64,000 nucleotides of DNA from Vitrella brassicaformis CCMP3155 (lineage: Eukaryota; Protista; Chromerida), in NCBI GenBank assembly GCA_001179505.1, contig CDMY01000227.1, positions 62,001-126,000 on the forward strand, in the 5' to 3' direction. Positions 12,656-28,460 of the stretch are shown one piece after another. Numbering within the stretch: position 1 is the first letter of the stretch; each line of letters starts with the position of its first letter. The position numbers and the translations under genes were made by a program. The notes under the pieces are model-generated. The model did no database searches, was not told the origin of the DNA, and worked only from the letters and a program-made list of their open reading frames with translations.

Positions 12656-20576
<7,921 letters not shown>

Positions 20577-20763: not shown

Positions 20764-20978
20764 AAGAGGTCCTTCGTTTTGCCTTCAAGGATGCTACGCT
20801 TGGCTGTCACGTGATTCGATTCGTCGCACCGGTGTGAATCGTGATCTACACAGATCGATGCGGCAGCAGACAGCGTCCGTGCCGGCGGGATCATTTCGGG
20901 AGGGAGTCCATTTCGCCCCTCCTCCCTCGCCCTCGCCGTCACCCAGCCCGTCGCCCTACGGTCCTCAGTCAGCTGGGA

Positions 20979-23900
20979 TGGGGTATCAGCCTGGCTACGA
21001 TGCGGAGGTCGACGTGGCTGGCGGGGAGAAGAGACCCTTCACCTCAGGTACGACGCACGCACGACGGTCCGCCGGTCTGTCCAGATGGACTGACGGGTGT
21101 GTCTGTGTCATCACACGGGAGGGAATGAGGAGGGAGATCTCTACTGCCGCCTCTCTGCATTTGCATCTGTGTGCTGTGTGTGTTCTGTCGTGTGCTGGTT
21201 CATATCAAAGGGGATGGTCGCTGGTTCTTGCCTCACTGTAGCGGTCATGCGCTGGAGGGGCGCGTGAGTGCCGCGCCCAAGAAGAAAGATCGACTCGTCC
21301 TCGAGTTCGCACTGCCGGGCGGTGGCGTCAAGAAGGTACACACACGCAGAGGCGCACACAAACACAAACACACACGGGCGCGCACTCAGTGATCGATCTT
21401 TTGTCTGTGTGTGTCCTCTTCTCTCCGTGTGTCGTGTCGGTGTGTGTGTGTCAGTTTTACCAGTGTAACTTTTGTCGCGACGAGAAGGGCATTCAGGAGT
21501 GGGTCTTCCACAAGAACTACGTCCACCAGCACATCCCCCGCCACCACAAGAACCACTGCCGCCTCTGCCAGTGGTGCGAGCAGCTCATCTTCGAGGAGGT
21601 CTTCGACACTCACACCAAGACATGCGAGAAAAGGGGCAAAGTCGTCAAGTCACAAACCGGCAGACGCAAGCGGGTCCAGGTTCACCCCCACTACCACCAG
21701 CAGCAGCAGCACATGGACAACACACCAATGTCCATGCTCACCACAGCCGGCCCGCAGTCGCCCCAGGGGTCACAATACAGTGGAGTCGGCTCGCCCACGC
21801 CCTACCAGCAGCAGCAGCAGTCCTACTCGCCCCAGCCCAACTATGAGAGCGCTGTGCAGCACCGCCAGTTTATCGCGCAGCAGGCACTTGGCAGCCACGA
21901 CAGCCCGGCGCCCTTCGTCTTTGGCGAGGCGTTGGCCTTGCCGCCCTCCCTCAATATGAGCGGCGACACAGCCCCCGACAGCCAGCAGACACAGACAGCC
22001 AACTTCGGCAGCCAACCGACGGCCCACTTCGGGCTGTATCCCAATGGCAATGGCGGGGATCAGCCGCTGTCGCCCCCGACCTCCCCCCTTCCCCCTCCCC
22101 CTCCCTACCCACGAGTCAGCAACCCCTACCACTACTCCAACATCAACATGCAGCAGCAGCAGCAGCAGGAGGCTGCCACCCCGCCCCCGTCGATGATAGC
22201 TGGCCCCGCCTATGGTGTGCCAGCTGGGCAGGCGCAGCCCTCTCATCCCCCCACACCGTCGCCCGAGCCGCCCTCGTTCATGCAGCGTCTTGCCAGCCAG
22301 TTCTCGCGCATGGTGCCGGGGCACACGCAGTCGAGCCCCGCCCGTCCCCCATCTCTCGACCAGGCCGTCACCCCAGACCCATCAGCATCAGCTACAGCAG
22401 GCCAGCTGCAGCAGGATAGAGTGACGGTCAAGCAGGAGTCCGGTGGGTCAGATTACGGTCCCCATGGAACGATGTCTGTGGCCATGCCCTTGCCCGTGTC
22501 GATGTCCATGCCCATGGGCACCACCTTCGACACTGGCCTCCTCAAGTCACAGTCGGGGTCGTCACTGCAGCTGGGTTTTGATAACGAGGCCGGCCTGCCC
22601 TCAATCCCCGAGCACGACTACGGCGAGGGTATCCAGATGGACGGCACCGGGCCCGGCCTGACCCTCTCCCTCTCCCTACAGACCCCGCGCGACAACGACA
22701 TGGACGCCGACGCCCTCCCCGCCGCCCCGCACGAGAGCGACTACCTGGGTGGCGGGGTGGCTTCCTCATCGGTCGACTACGGCTACATGGGAGGAGGGGG
22801 TATGGGCGAGGCTATGGGTGGCCCCAACGCCCTGGCGCAGGAGCCGTGGCCATGGGAGGGGCAGCTGGACACCGCCGACATCGTCAAGCGGGAGGCGGCC
22901 GACAAGCGAGGGCTCACGACTTCGATGCAGGACGTGCTGCCGGGCGCCAAGCGGCAGCGGGTGCAGAGCGTGGCCGAGGAAGAGGACAGCGTCAGTGGCA
23001 GCGTCGACTCGAGCACGGACAAGGGCCACCGCAGCAACAGATACTCGGACAAGACATACGAGACAGTGGAGATCAGAAGCCCCTTCAGCCAGAACTCCGC
23101 TGCAGCCACAGCCACCCAGCGTGGCACGCCGCCTTTCGGCGGGCAGCCCGGGTCGATGCTGGCGGTGCCGCCCACTCCATATGACCTGGGAGCGCCTGTG
23201 GGCAGCACCAGTGGTTCTGTGGCGAGCTTCCCTGCTGGTGCGGTTCTGCCGACCAACCAGGTGCAGCTGAGTGAGAGCCTGCTGCAGCAGATCCGGGAGA
23301 GCGGCAATGCCGTGGAGCTGCTGAAGGAACGGTTTGACATCGACTCGGAGGTCGACCTGGACGCCCTGCTCATGTACGCAAGAGAGCGAGTTCGCAAGAG
23401 AGAGACAAGGAACACAGACAGGCCGACTGTCCATATTTCTCTCCTTGTCTGGTCTGCCTGTAGGTATCTGCTGAGCGAGTCGACGGCCGTCCCTCAGCCT
23501 CCCAACCGTGGGCTCGGTCCCGGCTCCGGCGTGGGCGACACGGCGTATTGGCACCCGGTTGTGTCCCACCTCTCACAAGACGACTTCTCGCGGGGCATGT
23601 GTATCGGCATGGACGCACGCGGCCTCGTCTCGTTCGACACCACCACAGCCGGGCAGACCATCGGCCTGGTGCCCGAGATCTCACGTGTGGCCGAGCAGCG
23701 TGACTGGTTCTGCTGCAAGATAAGCACGTCAGCTGTCGACTCGACTGCTGTGGTGGGCAAGGAGGAGCCGACCATCAAAAAGGAGAAGGATGGCGGCGAG
23801 AAGGCCGGGCAGGAGGGCACCACCGGCAAGCAGCGGATGCGGTCGCCCATGGGTGCGGTCAAGGCGCTGGGGTCGTCGATATCGCGCTCAGGGTCATCCC

Positions 23901-26900
23901 CCAAGGCGGCTTACGAGTCCATCCCCACTCTGCGGCGGCAGAGCAACACCAACGAGTCCCTGCAGCGCAGCCTCTCCATCCCACCCAACCACAGCCACGT
24001 CCTCGTCTGCCTCTATGGCCGACAGCTGGCAAAGGTGGCCTACGGCGTGCAGCCGAGCCCCGGTGATTTCCTGGTGCCCTCTGGCGACAACGACGGTCTC
24101 TGGCGCATCCGTGACGCCGGCCCGGCCCTCAACCGGTCACTCACGTCCCCCGGACAAATAAAGGAGGACACAAAGAAGGCCGCGGGAGACAGTGATGATG
24201 ACCTCAAGGGCGGTGCTGCGGGCGCGTCGGCGTCGGCTGACGACCTCCTGGAGAAGAGCGTGCGCAAGGGCGGGCAGCTCAACGGCACCATCAGCAGCGT
24301 GCGCGTGGTCTCGTCTCGAATGACGGCCGACTCGTGTGTGGAGGTGGAGGTGGTCATGAACCAGCCGCTCATCCAGTCCCTGCTCTCAGAGATCCTCGAG
24401 TACGTCAAGGCCACCAAGCCCAAGGACGGCGTCGACACCCTCACGAGCGAGGGCGTGCTAGGGAGCCCCACGTCCCTCGAGCGCCTCTACGCCTCCCTGG
24501 AGCGGCTTCACGCCGCCCTCCCTGCCAAGCTGTTCGTCCCCCCGCCGTACGACAAGCTGGTCGGCCGTTCGCGCGAGCTGCAGGCCATAAGCGAGGTGTA
24601 CCGGCGACAGGAGGCGGTGCACGGCGCCACGCCCCTACTTCGGGTGGTGCAGCTGTGCGGCCTCCCGGGGGTGGGCAAGACCTGTGTGGCGGTCGCCTAC
24701 TGCCACCACTACCTACGCGCGAGCGAGCCGGCGACGGTTGTCTCGACGGATGCGCCACGCCCACAGACGTCGGGCAGCGCCACGAGCACCAGTGCCAGCA
24801 CGGCCACGGGGGGTGACCTGGTGCAGCTGGTCAAGCGTGACATTCACGGCAGCGGCGGTGGCGGTGGCGGTAGTCAAGACTTCTCGGAGTACGACCTCAT
24901 CCTGTGGCTCAACGGGGAGTCGCGCGAGGATCTGCGCAAGAGCTACCGCCGGCTTGCGCGTGACCTCAATCTGTACCTGGAGAACCAGGACCTCACTGAG
25001 GATCAGGTGGCCGCTGCCCTCAAGATGGAACTCCTCAGGTGAGCCAGCCACACACAGAGGCAAACCAAACAGGAAGAGTGAGGTCACCCACTCCTGAATG
25101 TGTGAGTCTGGTGTCTGTGAGTGTGTGCAGGTCGAGTCAGCGCGGCATCCGGTGGCTGGTGGTGCTTGACGGTCTGGACGAGACGGCTCTCGCAGTGGAT
25201 GACATCGTCCCCACCAACGCCCGCGGCCACGTCCTCATCACCGCTCGTGTGCCACGACTGCAGTACGCCCAGCGAGGCCAGTGTCTCGAGATCGAATCTC
25301 TGACCCTCCAGGACGCCGCCAACATACTCATCCGGGCCATCCAGCCGCCGCCCGCACTGGCCCTCACCACGGCTGATACTAGCGATCGTGACGAGAGCAG
25401 CCCTCCTACCACCCCACACCGCCGTCTGCCCAAGAGCGAGATCGTGGCGGCTCGCAAGCTGGCGGAGGCGGTGGGGTGTCTGCCCATCCAGCTTGCGCAC
25501 ATTGAGGCCTTCTTCCGGGCTGGTGGGGAGCTGGGGCTGACCTACGACGAGTTCTACCAGCGGTGGTTTGTCGAGAACAACCCTGACCTACAGGTTCGCA
25601 CAGATGCGATGCAGGAGGGGACGGGAGGAAAGACAGACCCAGAGGCCCATCCCATTCGTCATGTGTGCGTGTGTGTGACAAACAGGAGGCTTTCAACACG
25701 TTTGTGGCCCGCACTCTGGACGAGGAGCCGGCGAGTGTTGCCATGGTGGCGACGTACGAGTCGTTGTCGAAGCAGAGTCAGGCGGGTGGCCGCATCGCCG
25801 AGATGCTGGCGTACTGGGCGCCGTCGCCCGTCGGCTTCCCCAAGTGGGAGGAGCTGTTCAACGCCATGGTGGGCGTCAGCCCCAGAGTCCACGACAACGG
25901 ATGGTCGCCATTCCTGGTACGCACGCAGCGCAGCGCAGCGCAACGCAGAGGGAGGGAGGGAGGTGGAGAGGTCGACTACGAGTACACGAGTGTGTGTGTG
26001 TTGCAGGACGATCCGAATCCGAATCGCGAGAAGTGGCTGCGTCGTTTCCAGAGAATATTCACCATCATACTGCTGCTACTCGCATTCGTCTTCGGTAGGC
26101 GAGACAGAAAGGCAGACAGCGACGAGTGTGACACCAGGCCTGTAGGGACATGGGTCGACCGCTGTGTGGTGTCGTCGTGGTGTGTGGCCTGTGCAGGTAT
26201 CCGTTCCGCGATGTTGAGCTGGGAATCGCTCAAGGAGTCCCTGCCGAAGCCATGGCAGCAATACCTCGTCGGTACGCCACCATGATAGCAACACACGCAC
26301 GCACACACTTTTTCTTGTTCTGCTTTTTTCCTGACACTACAGCGGCTGTGTTGGGTCTGGTGATTGTTGGCCTGATGTTGCTGGGGGCATACTACCTGTC
26401 GAGAATGCCATTCAGCTTCCTCAGGCGCCTGTGCCTCCGGAATCAACCCAAAGTCAACCCAAAAGAGGTGAGGTGCAAAGGCACACCGACCGACCCGACT
26501 GACGCGCACAGCACAGCACAGCACAGCACACGGATAGCTAACGGCAATGTGTTGTGTGTGTTTACTGACTGATGCTATGCAGCGCATCCTGTTTGTCGTC
26601 GATGTGGGCTTCGATGCACGCGGACGGCTGCCCACACAATACTGCGAATACGTAAGTGAGAGGGATGCAGTCAATGGCACAAGCACTACAGAGGCACAGT
26701 GAGTGACCTACACACGCTGTGTGTTGCTCTGAATCAATATCATCCATCCATCAGATTGAGAGCGGTGCCGATTGCAGCGGCTGCGGGCGCCACATCGACC
26801 TGAAGCAGCCCCACGCCTCCATCTTCAGCTGCGTCCAGTGCGACGGCTTCATGCTCTGCCGCAAGTGCTACTACTCCGAGCGCTTCCGCAAGCACAAGAT

Positions 26901-28460
26901 CCCCACCCCCTGCCTCTCTAACGAGGCCTCCAACGTCGCCTCCCCAGGCAGTCCTCTCGGCTCGCAACTCACCGCGACAGACGAGTGTGAAACCACCGGC
27001 CATTGTTGCGGCGGCTGGTGGATCGCTCTGTACCACAGAGGGCCGAAGGAGCAGCTGGTCGGCGAGTCGGCGCCTCGTGAGGAGGAGGAGGAGGTGTTGT
27101 CTGTGTGGGGGATCCTCAAGACGCATGGCATCCTCAAGCTGGACATGGCCGACAAGACGGGTCGCGTGCACCCCTTCTTTCAGAAGGCGCTGCGGGACCA
27201 TTTGGCGCACGAGGCGGAGGTCACCCTCAGCTGGGAGGCCAAGCGCAAGATCCGAACCAGCCTCTTCACCTCCATGTGGATACTTCAGCGGCTCATGACA
27301 CGAGACAACCGCTCCTCGAGACCTGCAGACCCATCACAGGTCGGTCAGCAGCCTGATACACACACACACACACACACACACAGAGGGAGAGAGGGAGAGA
27401 GAGATGCGTACTTAGCTCTATATCTCCTTCCTTCTCACTGACAGCGTGAACACTTGGCTGCGATGAATCCGCACATCGACCACGTGGCGCGTTACATGGA
27501 GCGCTGCAAGCTGATGCGCAAGGGCCTCTTCAGGCGGTACGTCATCCAGAAGAAGTGGGCGGGCGAGCCAGAGCCAGAGGACGTCGCCGTCGACGTCTCC
27601 CTCCGCGGCATGCCCACCGGCGACCTCGAGGTCAAGCAAGTCGTCTCAGGCGTCACCAGCCCCTCCCTCGACTCGCAGGGCGGCGAGCAGGGGCAGAGCA
27701 ACCCCGACAGCGATCTGCAGGTGCAGAACAGCAAACTCAACGTCTCCCTCTGCGCCATGGCCGGCTCCCCCCAGCTCTCCGGCCACTCGCGCGTCTTCCC
27801 CTCCGTCTCCTTCCTGTCCAACATGTCGGGACTCGGTGACATGTTCCCCCCGTCAGCCACCGACCTCCTGGCCTCCCTCCCTGCCGCCCGGACCACCGCC
27901 AACAGCGGGCCGTTCTACATCGACTCCACCTCACCGGACAAAGGTGGCCGCCGGGTTGTGCGTGTCAAGGACGTGGGCGGCACGCCGTCCTTCGGGATGC
28001 CGTCGGACATCATGACGAGCTCGCATCGGGTGTTTATGTCGAGCCCTGACACGTACAAGTCGGCGTCAGGCCGGCGGACGGCCATGAATCCGCGGATGAA
28101 GCTCGAGGTGCCTTCGTCCTTGAGTGGGCACCAGCAGCAGCAGCAGGTGCAGGGGAGGGTGTCTGACGGGCGGTTCAGGGTGTATGAGAGCCTGCTGGAG
28201 GCGTTTGAGAAGCGGGGAGATAGGGACAAGGCTCGCCATCACACCGCCCCCGCCCCCGAGCCGTCACCCTCACCCTCACTCTCGTCAGCTGCCGAGGTCA
28301 GGAGGAGAGAGAAAGACAGACAGCGCAGTAACGAAGGGATCAGGTCACGACTGGTGGTTGTGTTGTGTGGACGTGTGTGTGTATGCAGGCGTTGGTGGAT
28401 CGCACCGTGGTCAAAATAATGGAGTCCCCCCGCACCCCACACCAGGAAGGAGAACCCTAG
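20979..28460 (+). CDS. Large multidomain protein: 2 N-terminal zinc fingers, Gln/Pro-rich region with NLS-like basic motifs, peptidase-G2/IMC-like domain, NB-ARC/STAND P-loop NTPase, 2-TM hairpin, ZZ zinc finger and Ser/Pro-rich tail
   Basis: Exons were assembled with consistent phases from ATG 20979 to TAG 28458-28460. Zinc fingers: CNFC..HIPRH and CQWC..HTKTC. G2-like: GDTAYWHP..GMCIGMDARGLVS..VCLYGRQLAKV..PGDFLVPSGDNDG. STAND: LVGRSREL, GLPGVGKT, WLVVLDGLDE, GHVLITAR, GCLPIQLAHI and RVHPFFQ. ZZ: CSGC..CVQCDGFMLCRKCY..H. Confidence 0.8.

Follow-up and report, generated by a model that had tools for sequence, protein, structure and literature searches.

Innate immunity and cell death depend centrally on STAND/NLR nucleoside triphosphatases (NTPases), which serve as switches in animals, plants, fungi and bacteria alike; to our knowledge, almost nothing is known about such NTPases of alveolates. 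The use of a phage chaperone domain for the release of a membrane-tethered regulator has a precedent in MYRF (PMC3742443, PMC3742440). Neither NB-ARC nor peptidase domains appear in a 2026 survey of membrane-bound transcription regulators (PMC13294678), and literature searches on the TSA (transcriptome shotgun assembly) accession, on eukaryotic Peptidase_G2 and on Vitrella together with NB-ARC returned nothing relevant. Here a gene of Vitrella brassicaformis CCMP3155 is described that lies on the plus strand of a stretch of 64,000 nucleotides (contig CDMY01000227.1, positions 62,001 to 126,000; called the window, to which all coordinates refer). Its product combines a zinc-finger head, a beta-rich domain with the motif GDTAYW, an NB-ARC/STAND NTPase, a two-helix membrane hairpin and a Cys-rich finger. 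Such a layout, a hairpin-anchored NTPase with a zinc-finger head, a domain known from two organisms and no repeat sensor, is not described elsewhere. The sequence-only reading of this DNA had seen in it a MYRF-like sensor, switch and transcription factor in one chain. The order of the parts, their presence on one mRNA and their conservation held up, whereas the likeness to MYRF suffered from the lack of Ndt80 and S74 domains, a weak resemblance to Peptidase_G2, a cleavage motif not recognisable in the Vitrella protein and unsupported DNA binding. We favour, with a probability of roughly 0.45, an NLR-like switch that resides in the membrane, is not cleaved and carries a zinc-finger head for its output.

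A single expressed gene occupies the locus. Sequence reading and translation gave a single plus-strand gene from an ATG at 20978 to a stop codon at 28458-28460, with a product of 2,082 residues encoded in 13 exons (20978-21047, 21211-21335, 21455-23373, 23464-25038, 25131-25593, 25686-25916, 26007-26094, 26197-26271, 26343-26467, 26583-26651, 26755-27339, 27445-28296 and 28389-28460). RNA evidence came from Logan contigs of four public runs, compared with the window from 20900 to 26899. The X6 and X7 contigs are spliced and support ten introns, every one with GT..AG borders on the plus strand (21048-21210, 21336-21454, 23374-23463, 25039-25130, 25594-25685, 25917-26006, 26095-26196, 26272-26342, 26468-26582 and 26652-26754). 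A 6,828-nt contig of X7, with a depth of 132, spans the region from 20908 to beyond 26899 and carries all ten splices; one mRNA thus contains the sequences for the zinc fingers, the GDTAYW domain, the NTPase and both membrane helices, and the beginning of the exon that encodes the Cys-rich finger. The last two introns (27340-27444 and 28297-28388, plus strand) are predicted from GT..AG sites, the reading frame and similarity to a homologue. The earlier claim of one phase-consistent gene is therefore borne out by the spliced contigs from the 5' end to the Cys-finger exon, and its ends, 20979 and 28460, lie within one base of our model. In its exon chain, the 90-nt intron 23374-23463 had been missed: being in frame, bordered by GT..AG and free of stop codons, it had been read through, while the joint 23373/23464 is present in X6 and X7 contigs. 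A retained intron would add 30 residues, including the hydrophobic run H-I-S-L-L-V-W-S-A-C, between an acidic patch and the GDTAYW domain; such a product may represent an alternative isoform. The RNA contigs, together with the collinearity of the homologue, led us to reject a chimeric or artefactual gene model. Two minus-strand open reading frames (ORFs) within the gene (22766-23569 and 25976-26686) were rejected as chance ORFs of GC-rich DNA, every splice site being on the plus strand.

At the 5' end, an X6 contig reaches about 115 nt upstream of 20900, and the transcript thus extends 5' of the ATG at 20978 (region 20785-20980). An in-frame ATG at 20858 lies inside the transcript and may be the true start, which would add 40 residues rich in proline and serine. 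An upstream ORF of seven codons begins at 20791. In the CAG/Gln-rich part of the linker (21690-22170), the contigs of all four runs showed many chimeric joints and loose ends, e.g., from 21711 to 22150; joints within this part are repeat-driven assembly artefacts rather than splicing. Many intron borders between 21097 and 28388 lie in microsatellite-like GT/CA runs, beginning for example with GTGTGT... and ending with ...GTGTGTGCAG, and these runs account for the C-V-C-V and H-T-H-T runs in the ORF translations.

A single relative was obtained by a word-indexed search in 5.8 billion proteins, and it was also the sole match of word-based searches with the window ORF and with the relative itself. 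This protein (P0001) is a complete ORF of 1,145 residues from the transcriptome of Digyalum oweni (EukProt EP00916). The transcriptome originates from a single-cell study that placed Digyalum outside the Apicomplexa proper, near Platyproteum (PMC6733595); the NCBI taxonomy keeps the genus under the gregarines. An exhaustive HMMER search of the GDTAYW-domain profile in 1.84 billion representative proteins yielded nothing besides the Digyalum protein, and DNA-pattern scans in metagenome and viral contigs gave no confirmed relative. Within the databases searched, the family is known from two organisms only. Both proteins are collinear in the N-terminal motif, the fingers, the GDTAYW domain, the P-loop, Walker B, the hairpin, the Cys-rich finger and the tail, and by these alignments the order of the parts is conserved between two distant myzozoans. 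Identity was 51 % in the N-terminal motif, 47-48 % in the two fingers, 64 %, 52 % and 53 % in the blocks 1, 2 and 3 of the GDTAYW domain (tblastn), 27 % in the P-loop region, 24 % in the Walker B region and 38 % in the Cys-rich finger (E 0.4). The hydrophobic helices aligned weakly, and so did the tail. The Vitrella protein has nearly twice the length of its homologue, an excess made up entirely of low-complexity sequence, which lies in the linker, at two places within the GDTAYW domain, past the P-loop and in the tail.

The NTPase (24560..25916, plus strand) was recognised by Pfam, NCBIfam and motif reading. Walker A reads GLPGVGKT (24659-24682) and Walker B WLVVLDGLDE (25153-25182), followed 3' by a sensor-like T-A-R motif and a GLPL-like G-x-LP; the corresponding Walker motifs of the Digyalum protein are GLPGIGKS and WLIVLDG. 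Walker A, Walker B, T-x-R and the GLPL-like motif are thus intact in both proteins. The Digyalum protein exceeded the Pfam cut-off for NB-ARC (PF00931, 29.3 bits against 23.5), with NACHT and nSTAND3 below threshold. The Pfam matches of the window were P-loop families below threshold, and its two NTPase exons matched the NTPase part of NCBIfam NF040586 (E 7e-13 and 9e-11). Weak PDB matches were plant NRC NLRs and ZAR1. The assignment to NB-ARC/STAND made in the sequence-only reading is confirmed.

Between NTPase and tail, a two-helix membrane hairpin extends over four exons (26052..26405, plus strand). By Kyte-Doolittle hydropathy in windows of 19 residues, the transmembrane helices occupy residues 1478-1496 and 1513-1531, joined by a loop of about 14-20 residues. 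The hydropathy means were 2.36 and 2.57, compared with 2.69 and 2.79 for the corresponding helices of the Digyalum protein, hence the two helices that had been read here earlier are present in both organisms with values above 2.3. Basic residues flank both helices on the outer side. According to the positive-inside rule, the N- and C-terminal parts would then lie on the same, cytosolic side of the membrane, and all soluble parts are probably cytosolic or nucleoplasmic. The hairpin is followed by a Cys-rich cross-brace finger of the pattern C-x2-C-x15-C-x2-C-x5-C-x2-C ... H (26773..26895, plus strand), conserved in residues 948-994 of the Digyalum protein. The RING-like zf-UDP family of Pfam matched it with E 0.0076-0.037, below the cut-off. 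The earlier label of a ZZ finger was not retained: PF00569 gave E 0.33 and 11.2 bits against a cut-off of 21.4, and residues 940-1000 of the Digyalum protein had no match.

Motif reading suggested that the hairpin and the Cys-rich finger interrupt a winged-helix domain. The first winged-helix helices (T-Y-E-S-L-S ...) were read in exon 25686-25916, before the hairpin, and comparison with the usual winged-helix pattern of NB-ARC proteins placed the rest of this STAND domain, including an MHD-like V-H-P, probably at 27094..27204 (plus strand). A language-model search (Atlas) with the tail of the Digyalum protein scored 0.84 to clusters of DUF7779, WHD_NWD1 and WHD_MalT, which is taken as a lead only; Pfam had no match in the winged-helix region past the Cys-rich finger. 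The winged-helix domain thus appears to be split by an inserted hairpin and finger. Since this domain is the part that moves on activation, a hairpin inside it would place the membrane anchor at the moving part of the switch. The protein ends in a Ser/Pro-rich tail of about 300 residues (27445..28460, plus strand; by composition) without a Pfam match, the start of which is weakly similar to the tail of the Digyalum protein.

The head of the protein begins with a conserved motif, RW..G..L.G.VS.APKKK.RL..EF (21211..21335, plus strand; tblastn to residues 19-55 of the Digyalum protein), which contains a KKK-x-R patch and may form short strands according to a low-confidence AlphaFold2 model with a predicted local distance difference test (pLDDT) of about 50-58. 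Two small zinc fingers follow (21455..21628, plus strand; residues 58-120 of the Digyalum protein), the first of the type C-x2-C-x18-H-x3-H(H), reading CNFC-x18-HIPRH, and the second of the type C-x2-C-x2-C-x11-H-x3-C. The presence of both fingers agrees with the sequence-only reading, as does that of basic motifs resembling nuclear localization signals (NLS) and of a long Gln/Pro-rich region, found by regular expressions and composition. From a three-row alignment, AlphaFold2 modelled the head with a pLDDT of 71 overall and 78-90 across the fingers, as small strand-strand-helix fingers. Foldseek gave nothing significant with this model: the best match was the finger array of Cep104 (E 0.18, probability 0.92), next came the CHHC fingers of GTSF1 and the TRAF-type fingers of XAF1, all three with E above 0.1, and further matches were Sgf11 and ZC2HC1A. 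Fingers of these types mostly bind proteins or RNA. Neither in the window pieces nor in the Digyalum protein did Pfam assign the N-terminal fingers to a zinc-finger family, and Atlas placed the head with C2H2-like clusters at 0.89-0.92 that share few features with it. The models thus point weakly to an array nearer to protein- or RNA-binding fingers than to classical DNA-binding arrays, and DNA binding by these fingers, although conceivable, is unsupported. Directly 3' of finger 2 lies a basic NLS-like patch, KRGK...RRKR (21629..21673, plus strand; regular expression on the gene model), the position of which is only partly basic in the Digyalum protein. The Pro/Ser/Gly/Gln-rich low-complexity linker of about 550 residues (21674..23335, plus strand; by composition and alignment) contains in residues 139-690 12 % proline, 12 % serine, 10 % glycine and 10 % glutamine, and a KRQR motif at about 22949-22960. 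The linker of the Digyalum protein is much shorter and not conserved. Among the three basic motifs, only K-K-K-x-R in the N-terminal motif is clearly conserved.

The key part of the protein is the beta-rich GDTAYW domain (23464..24370, plus strand). It comprises about 150 residues conserved with the Digyalum protein in three blocks (23464-23722, 23948-24112 and 24281-24370), which are separated by two lineage-specific low-complexity inserts. The sequence-only reading had called it peptidase-G2/IMC-like, a label that the family databases do not back. Peptidase_G2 in Pfam had no match up to an E of 10, neither for residues 370-540 of the Digyalum protein nor for the domain of the window; PHROGs gave no match up to the same E, and the NCBIfam scan and the PDB sequence searches with the profiles A1 and A3 remained empty. 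A tblastn search of 50,697 phage records returned only matches with E of 3 or more, and a hidden Markov model (HMM) of G2 built by us detected nothing within the GDTAYW domain of either protein, even with --max. The language model gave a different picture. With residues 370-540 of the Digyalum protein, Atlas returned a top score of 0.95, a score that shuffled proteins reach about once per 100 according to the calibration stated by the tool. Among the 100 hits, 34 carried PF11962 Peptidase_G2 and 65 were clusters that share no Pfam family, the top ones being phage clusters.

For a direct comparison, gp12 of phage phi29 (PF11962 at residues 643-854) served as reference; 120 relatives were gathered and non-redundant alignments were built. 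The two-species profile aligned by hhalign to phi29-type G2 with P values of 0.01 and 0.0064, at a probability of only 4-6 %. Column shuffles equalled the score in 8 of 300 trials and block shuffles in 2 of 200. The best segment paired H-V-L-V-C-L-Y-G-R-Q...G-D-x-L-V-P-S-G with V-V-G-L-L-G-Q-V...G-D-x-I, a single strand-turn-strand motif of 26-36 columns. In a relaxed alignment, L-S-E-S-T-A / I-S-A-G paired with I-S-E-T-A-G, G-D-T-A-Y-W with G-E-S-S-F-E-W and L-K-N-D-A-F..G with L-K-N-E-F-G-G. Whereas G2 is C-terminal and comes after a trimeric beta-helix, the GDTAYW domain lies within the chain, behind a low-complexity linker. Taken together, a Peptidase_G2 ancestry of the domain appears slightly the better supposition by sequence comparison.

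The cleavage motif of G2 provides a second line of comparison. Among 39 G2 sequences, E-Y-F-E was invariant and the preceding aspartate nearly so (D-x-x-E-Y-F-E); D692 and E695-E698 of gp12 are presumably the catalytic residues at the cleavage site. Both eukaryotic proteins have, by pairwise alignment, a conserved acidic patch (23336..23373, plus strand), which reads F-D-I-D-S-E in the window and I-D-E-S-E-N-F in the Digyalum protein and is located about 25-30 residues upstream of GDTAYW. In the global hhalign alignment, D-E-S-E-N-F of the Digyalum protein stands opposite D-F-A-E-Y-F of gp12. If the G2 alignment is right, the patch would be the counterpart of the phage cleavage site. The D-x-x-E-Y-F-E motif is not preserved in the Vitrella protein, where the sequence F-D-I-D-S-E-V-D-L departs from the D-x-x-E-x-F spacing, and both proteins lack about 15-20 residues that form a hairpin after the motif in G2. 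By the one alignment obtained, GDTAYW itself lies about 40 residues downstream of the position equivalent to the cleavage site, therefore homology does not predict the cleavage near GDTAYW that had been proposed before, and the motif at the aligned site is unrecognisable in the Vitrella protein.

In the favoured mechanism, the NTPase would exchange its nucleotide and oligomerise at the membrane, and would thereby bring together the beta domains and the zinc-finger heads. Gathered in this way, the heads would be the output and might bind protein or nucleic acid; the chain would remain intact throughout. The beta domain would act as an oligomerisation or sensing module and have no role as protease. 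In its favour are the single mRNA, the collinear homologue, the NTPase motifs and profile matches, the two hydrophobic helices of both proteins and, weakly, the likeness of the fingers to protein- or RNA-binding ones. The order of head and NTPase corresponds to that of usual NLRs, in which an effector is N-terminal and the nucleotide-binding oligomerisation domain comes next, and the cleavage motif, invariant or nearly so in 39 phage-type sequences, is not preserved in the Vitrella protein. Several observations weigh against this mechanism. Self-chaperone domains act by self-cleavage, the match of the language model to phage G2 clusters is strong and consistent across the hits, and the Digyalum protein has kept at the predicted site the spacing D-x-x-E-x-F, though of the motif only D, E and F. 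The Gln/Pro-rich linker and the basic motifs beside zinc fingers would suit a released transcription regulator. A sensor is missing: Pfam scans of the window pieces and the Digyalum protein contained no LRR, WD40 or TPR repeat families. Finally, the AlphaFold2 model of the GDTAYW domain, from a shallow alignment, had a pLDDT of 35 and was unusable, thus the key domain contributes no fold evidence.

An alternative that we consider unlikely is a MYRF-like tethered regulator, in which the G2-like domain trimerises and cuts at its N-terminal border, the zinc-finger head is freed with its Gln/Pro-rich linker and enters the nucleus, and STAND oligomerisation may gate the cut. The domain order parallels the logic of MYRF and is conserved in two distant lineages, the language model places the GDTAYW domain among phage clusters, a third of them with PF11962, the motifs IS-E-T-A-G, G-x-x-x-F-x-W, L-K-N-E-F-G-G and VVGLLGQ...GD are collinear with gp12 at hhalign P values of 0.006-0.01, the acidic patch of the Digyalum protein faces the phage site, and NLS-like motifs are available. 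However, Pfam, PHROGs, PDB sequence and exhaustive HMM searches established no link to G2 or S74, the hhalign probability stayed at 4-6 %, E-Y-F-E and the subsequent hairpin are missing in the Vitrella protein, an upstream beta-helix to be folded by a chaperone is absent, and the fingers have no supported DNA binding. We also know of no self-cleaving chaperone with an NTPase between chaperone and anchor, which counts against this model. Under this model, a self-chaperone of phage tail spikes would have been domesticated independently for a second time, here of the G2 type where MYRF has the S74 type, as a release device gated by an NB-ARC/STAND NTPase in the same chain, a proposition we regard as doubtful. 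If true, sensing, switching and transcriptional output would be united in one polypeptide that predates the split of Digyalum and the chrompodellids.

With a similarly low probability, the likeness to G2 is due to chance or convergence and GDTAYW is a lineage-specific beta domain that serves as the missing sensor of a STAND switch by binding a ligand or a partner. This explanation overlaps with the favoured uncleaved switch except for the origin and role of the domain. It would account for a family of only two members in 1.84 billion representative proteins, for an hhalign match confined to a strand-turn-strand pattern that is common in beta barrels and for shuffled controls that reach the score in 1-3 % of the trials, and the protein offers no other candidate sensor; yet the hits of the language model are consistently phage and G2, and several further motifs are collinear with gp12. 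Least probable is a tethered regulator freed by another protease, either SREBP-like or by the proteasome as Nrf1 and Spt23/Mga2, with the beta domain and the NTPase in regulatory roles, because the hairpin with its presumed same-side ends, the long disordered linker accessible to proteases and the N-terminal zinc fingers and basic motifs are offset by a loop that leaves little room for a luminal site-1 cut, by the lack of an identifiable partner or cleavage motif and by the same doubts about DNA binding of the fingers.

With a GC content of about 60 %, the window is GC-rich; its DNA is eukaryotic, its GT..AG introns are short, and no Rfam family was found in it. A multi-exon ABC transporter is located at 13644-20493 on the minus strand, head-to-head with the studied gene. 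Its four long ORFs contain a single ABC_membrane region and two regions of the ABC_tran type, and about 0.4-0.5 kb separate the starts of the two genes.

In comparison with known systems, the protein shares with MYRF and MrfA an N-terminal nuclear-type region with basic motifs and Pro/Gln-rich sequence, possibly a phage-chaperone-like domain and a membrane anchor further C-terminal. Pfam scans of the window pieces and the Digyalum protein revealed no Ndt80/PhoG-type DNA-binding domain, even up to E values of 1-10, and no Peptidase_S74 (PF13884), which was also absent from the PHROGs results; the protein is thus not a member of the MYRF family. Unlike MYRF and MrfA, the Vitrella protein has a candidate chaperone that is at best G2-like, an NB-ARC NTPase between this candidate and the anchor, and as anchor a two-helix hairpin instead of a single pass. 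To gp12 of phi29 it is linked by weak collinear motifs over about 140 columns and the language-model match, while the domain is internal, without a preceding beta-helix, with D-x-x-E-Y-F-E and the hairpin missing or altered and without a Pfam match. SREBP resembles it in a hairpin whose topology would leave the putative regulator at the N-terminus and the regulatory part at the C-terminus on one side of the membrane; the Vitrella protein lacks a bHLH domain, has a very short loop and carries an in-chain NTPase in place of the SCAP-binding domain. With the NB-ARC/STAND proteins Apaf-1, CED-4, NRC and ZAR1 it has in common the P-loop, Walker B, T-x-R and GLPL-like motifs and an N-terminal head outside the NTPase. 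It differs from these NLRs in the absence of an LRR, WD40 or TPR sensor, in a hairpin and a Cys-rich finger apparently placed within the winged-helix domain and in a zinc-finger head and a GDTAYW domain that replace CARD, CC or TIR. Should the head be released, a MYRF-like pathway would have been built from different parts and an NLR-type switch tied directly to gene regulation; should it stay attached, the protein would offer a compact model for the coupling of membrane attachment to STAND activation.

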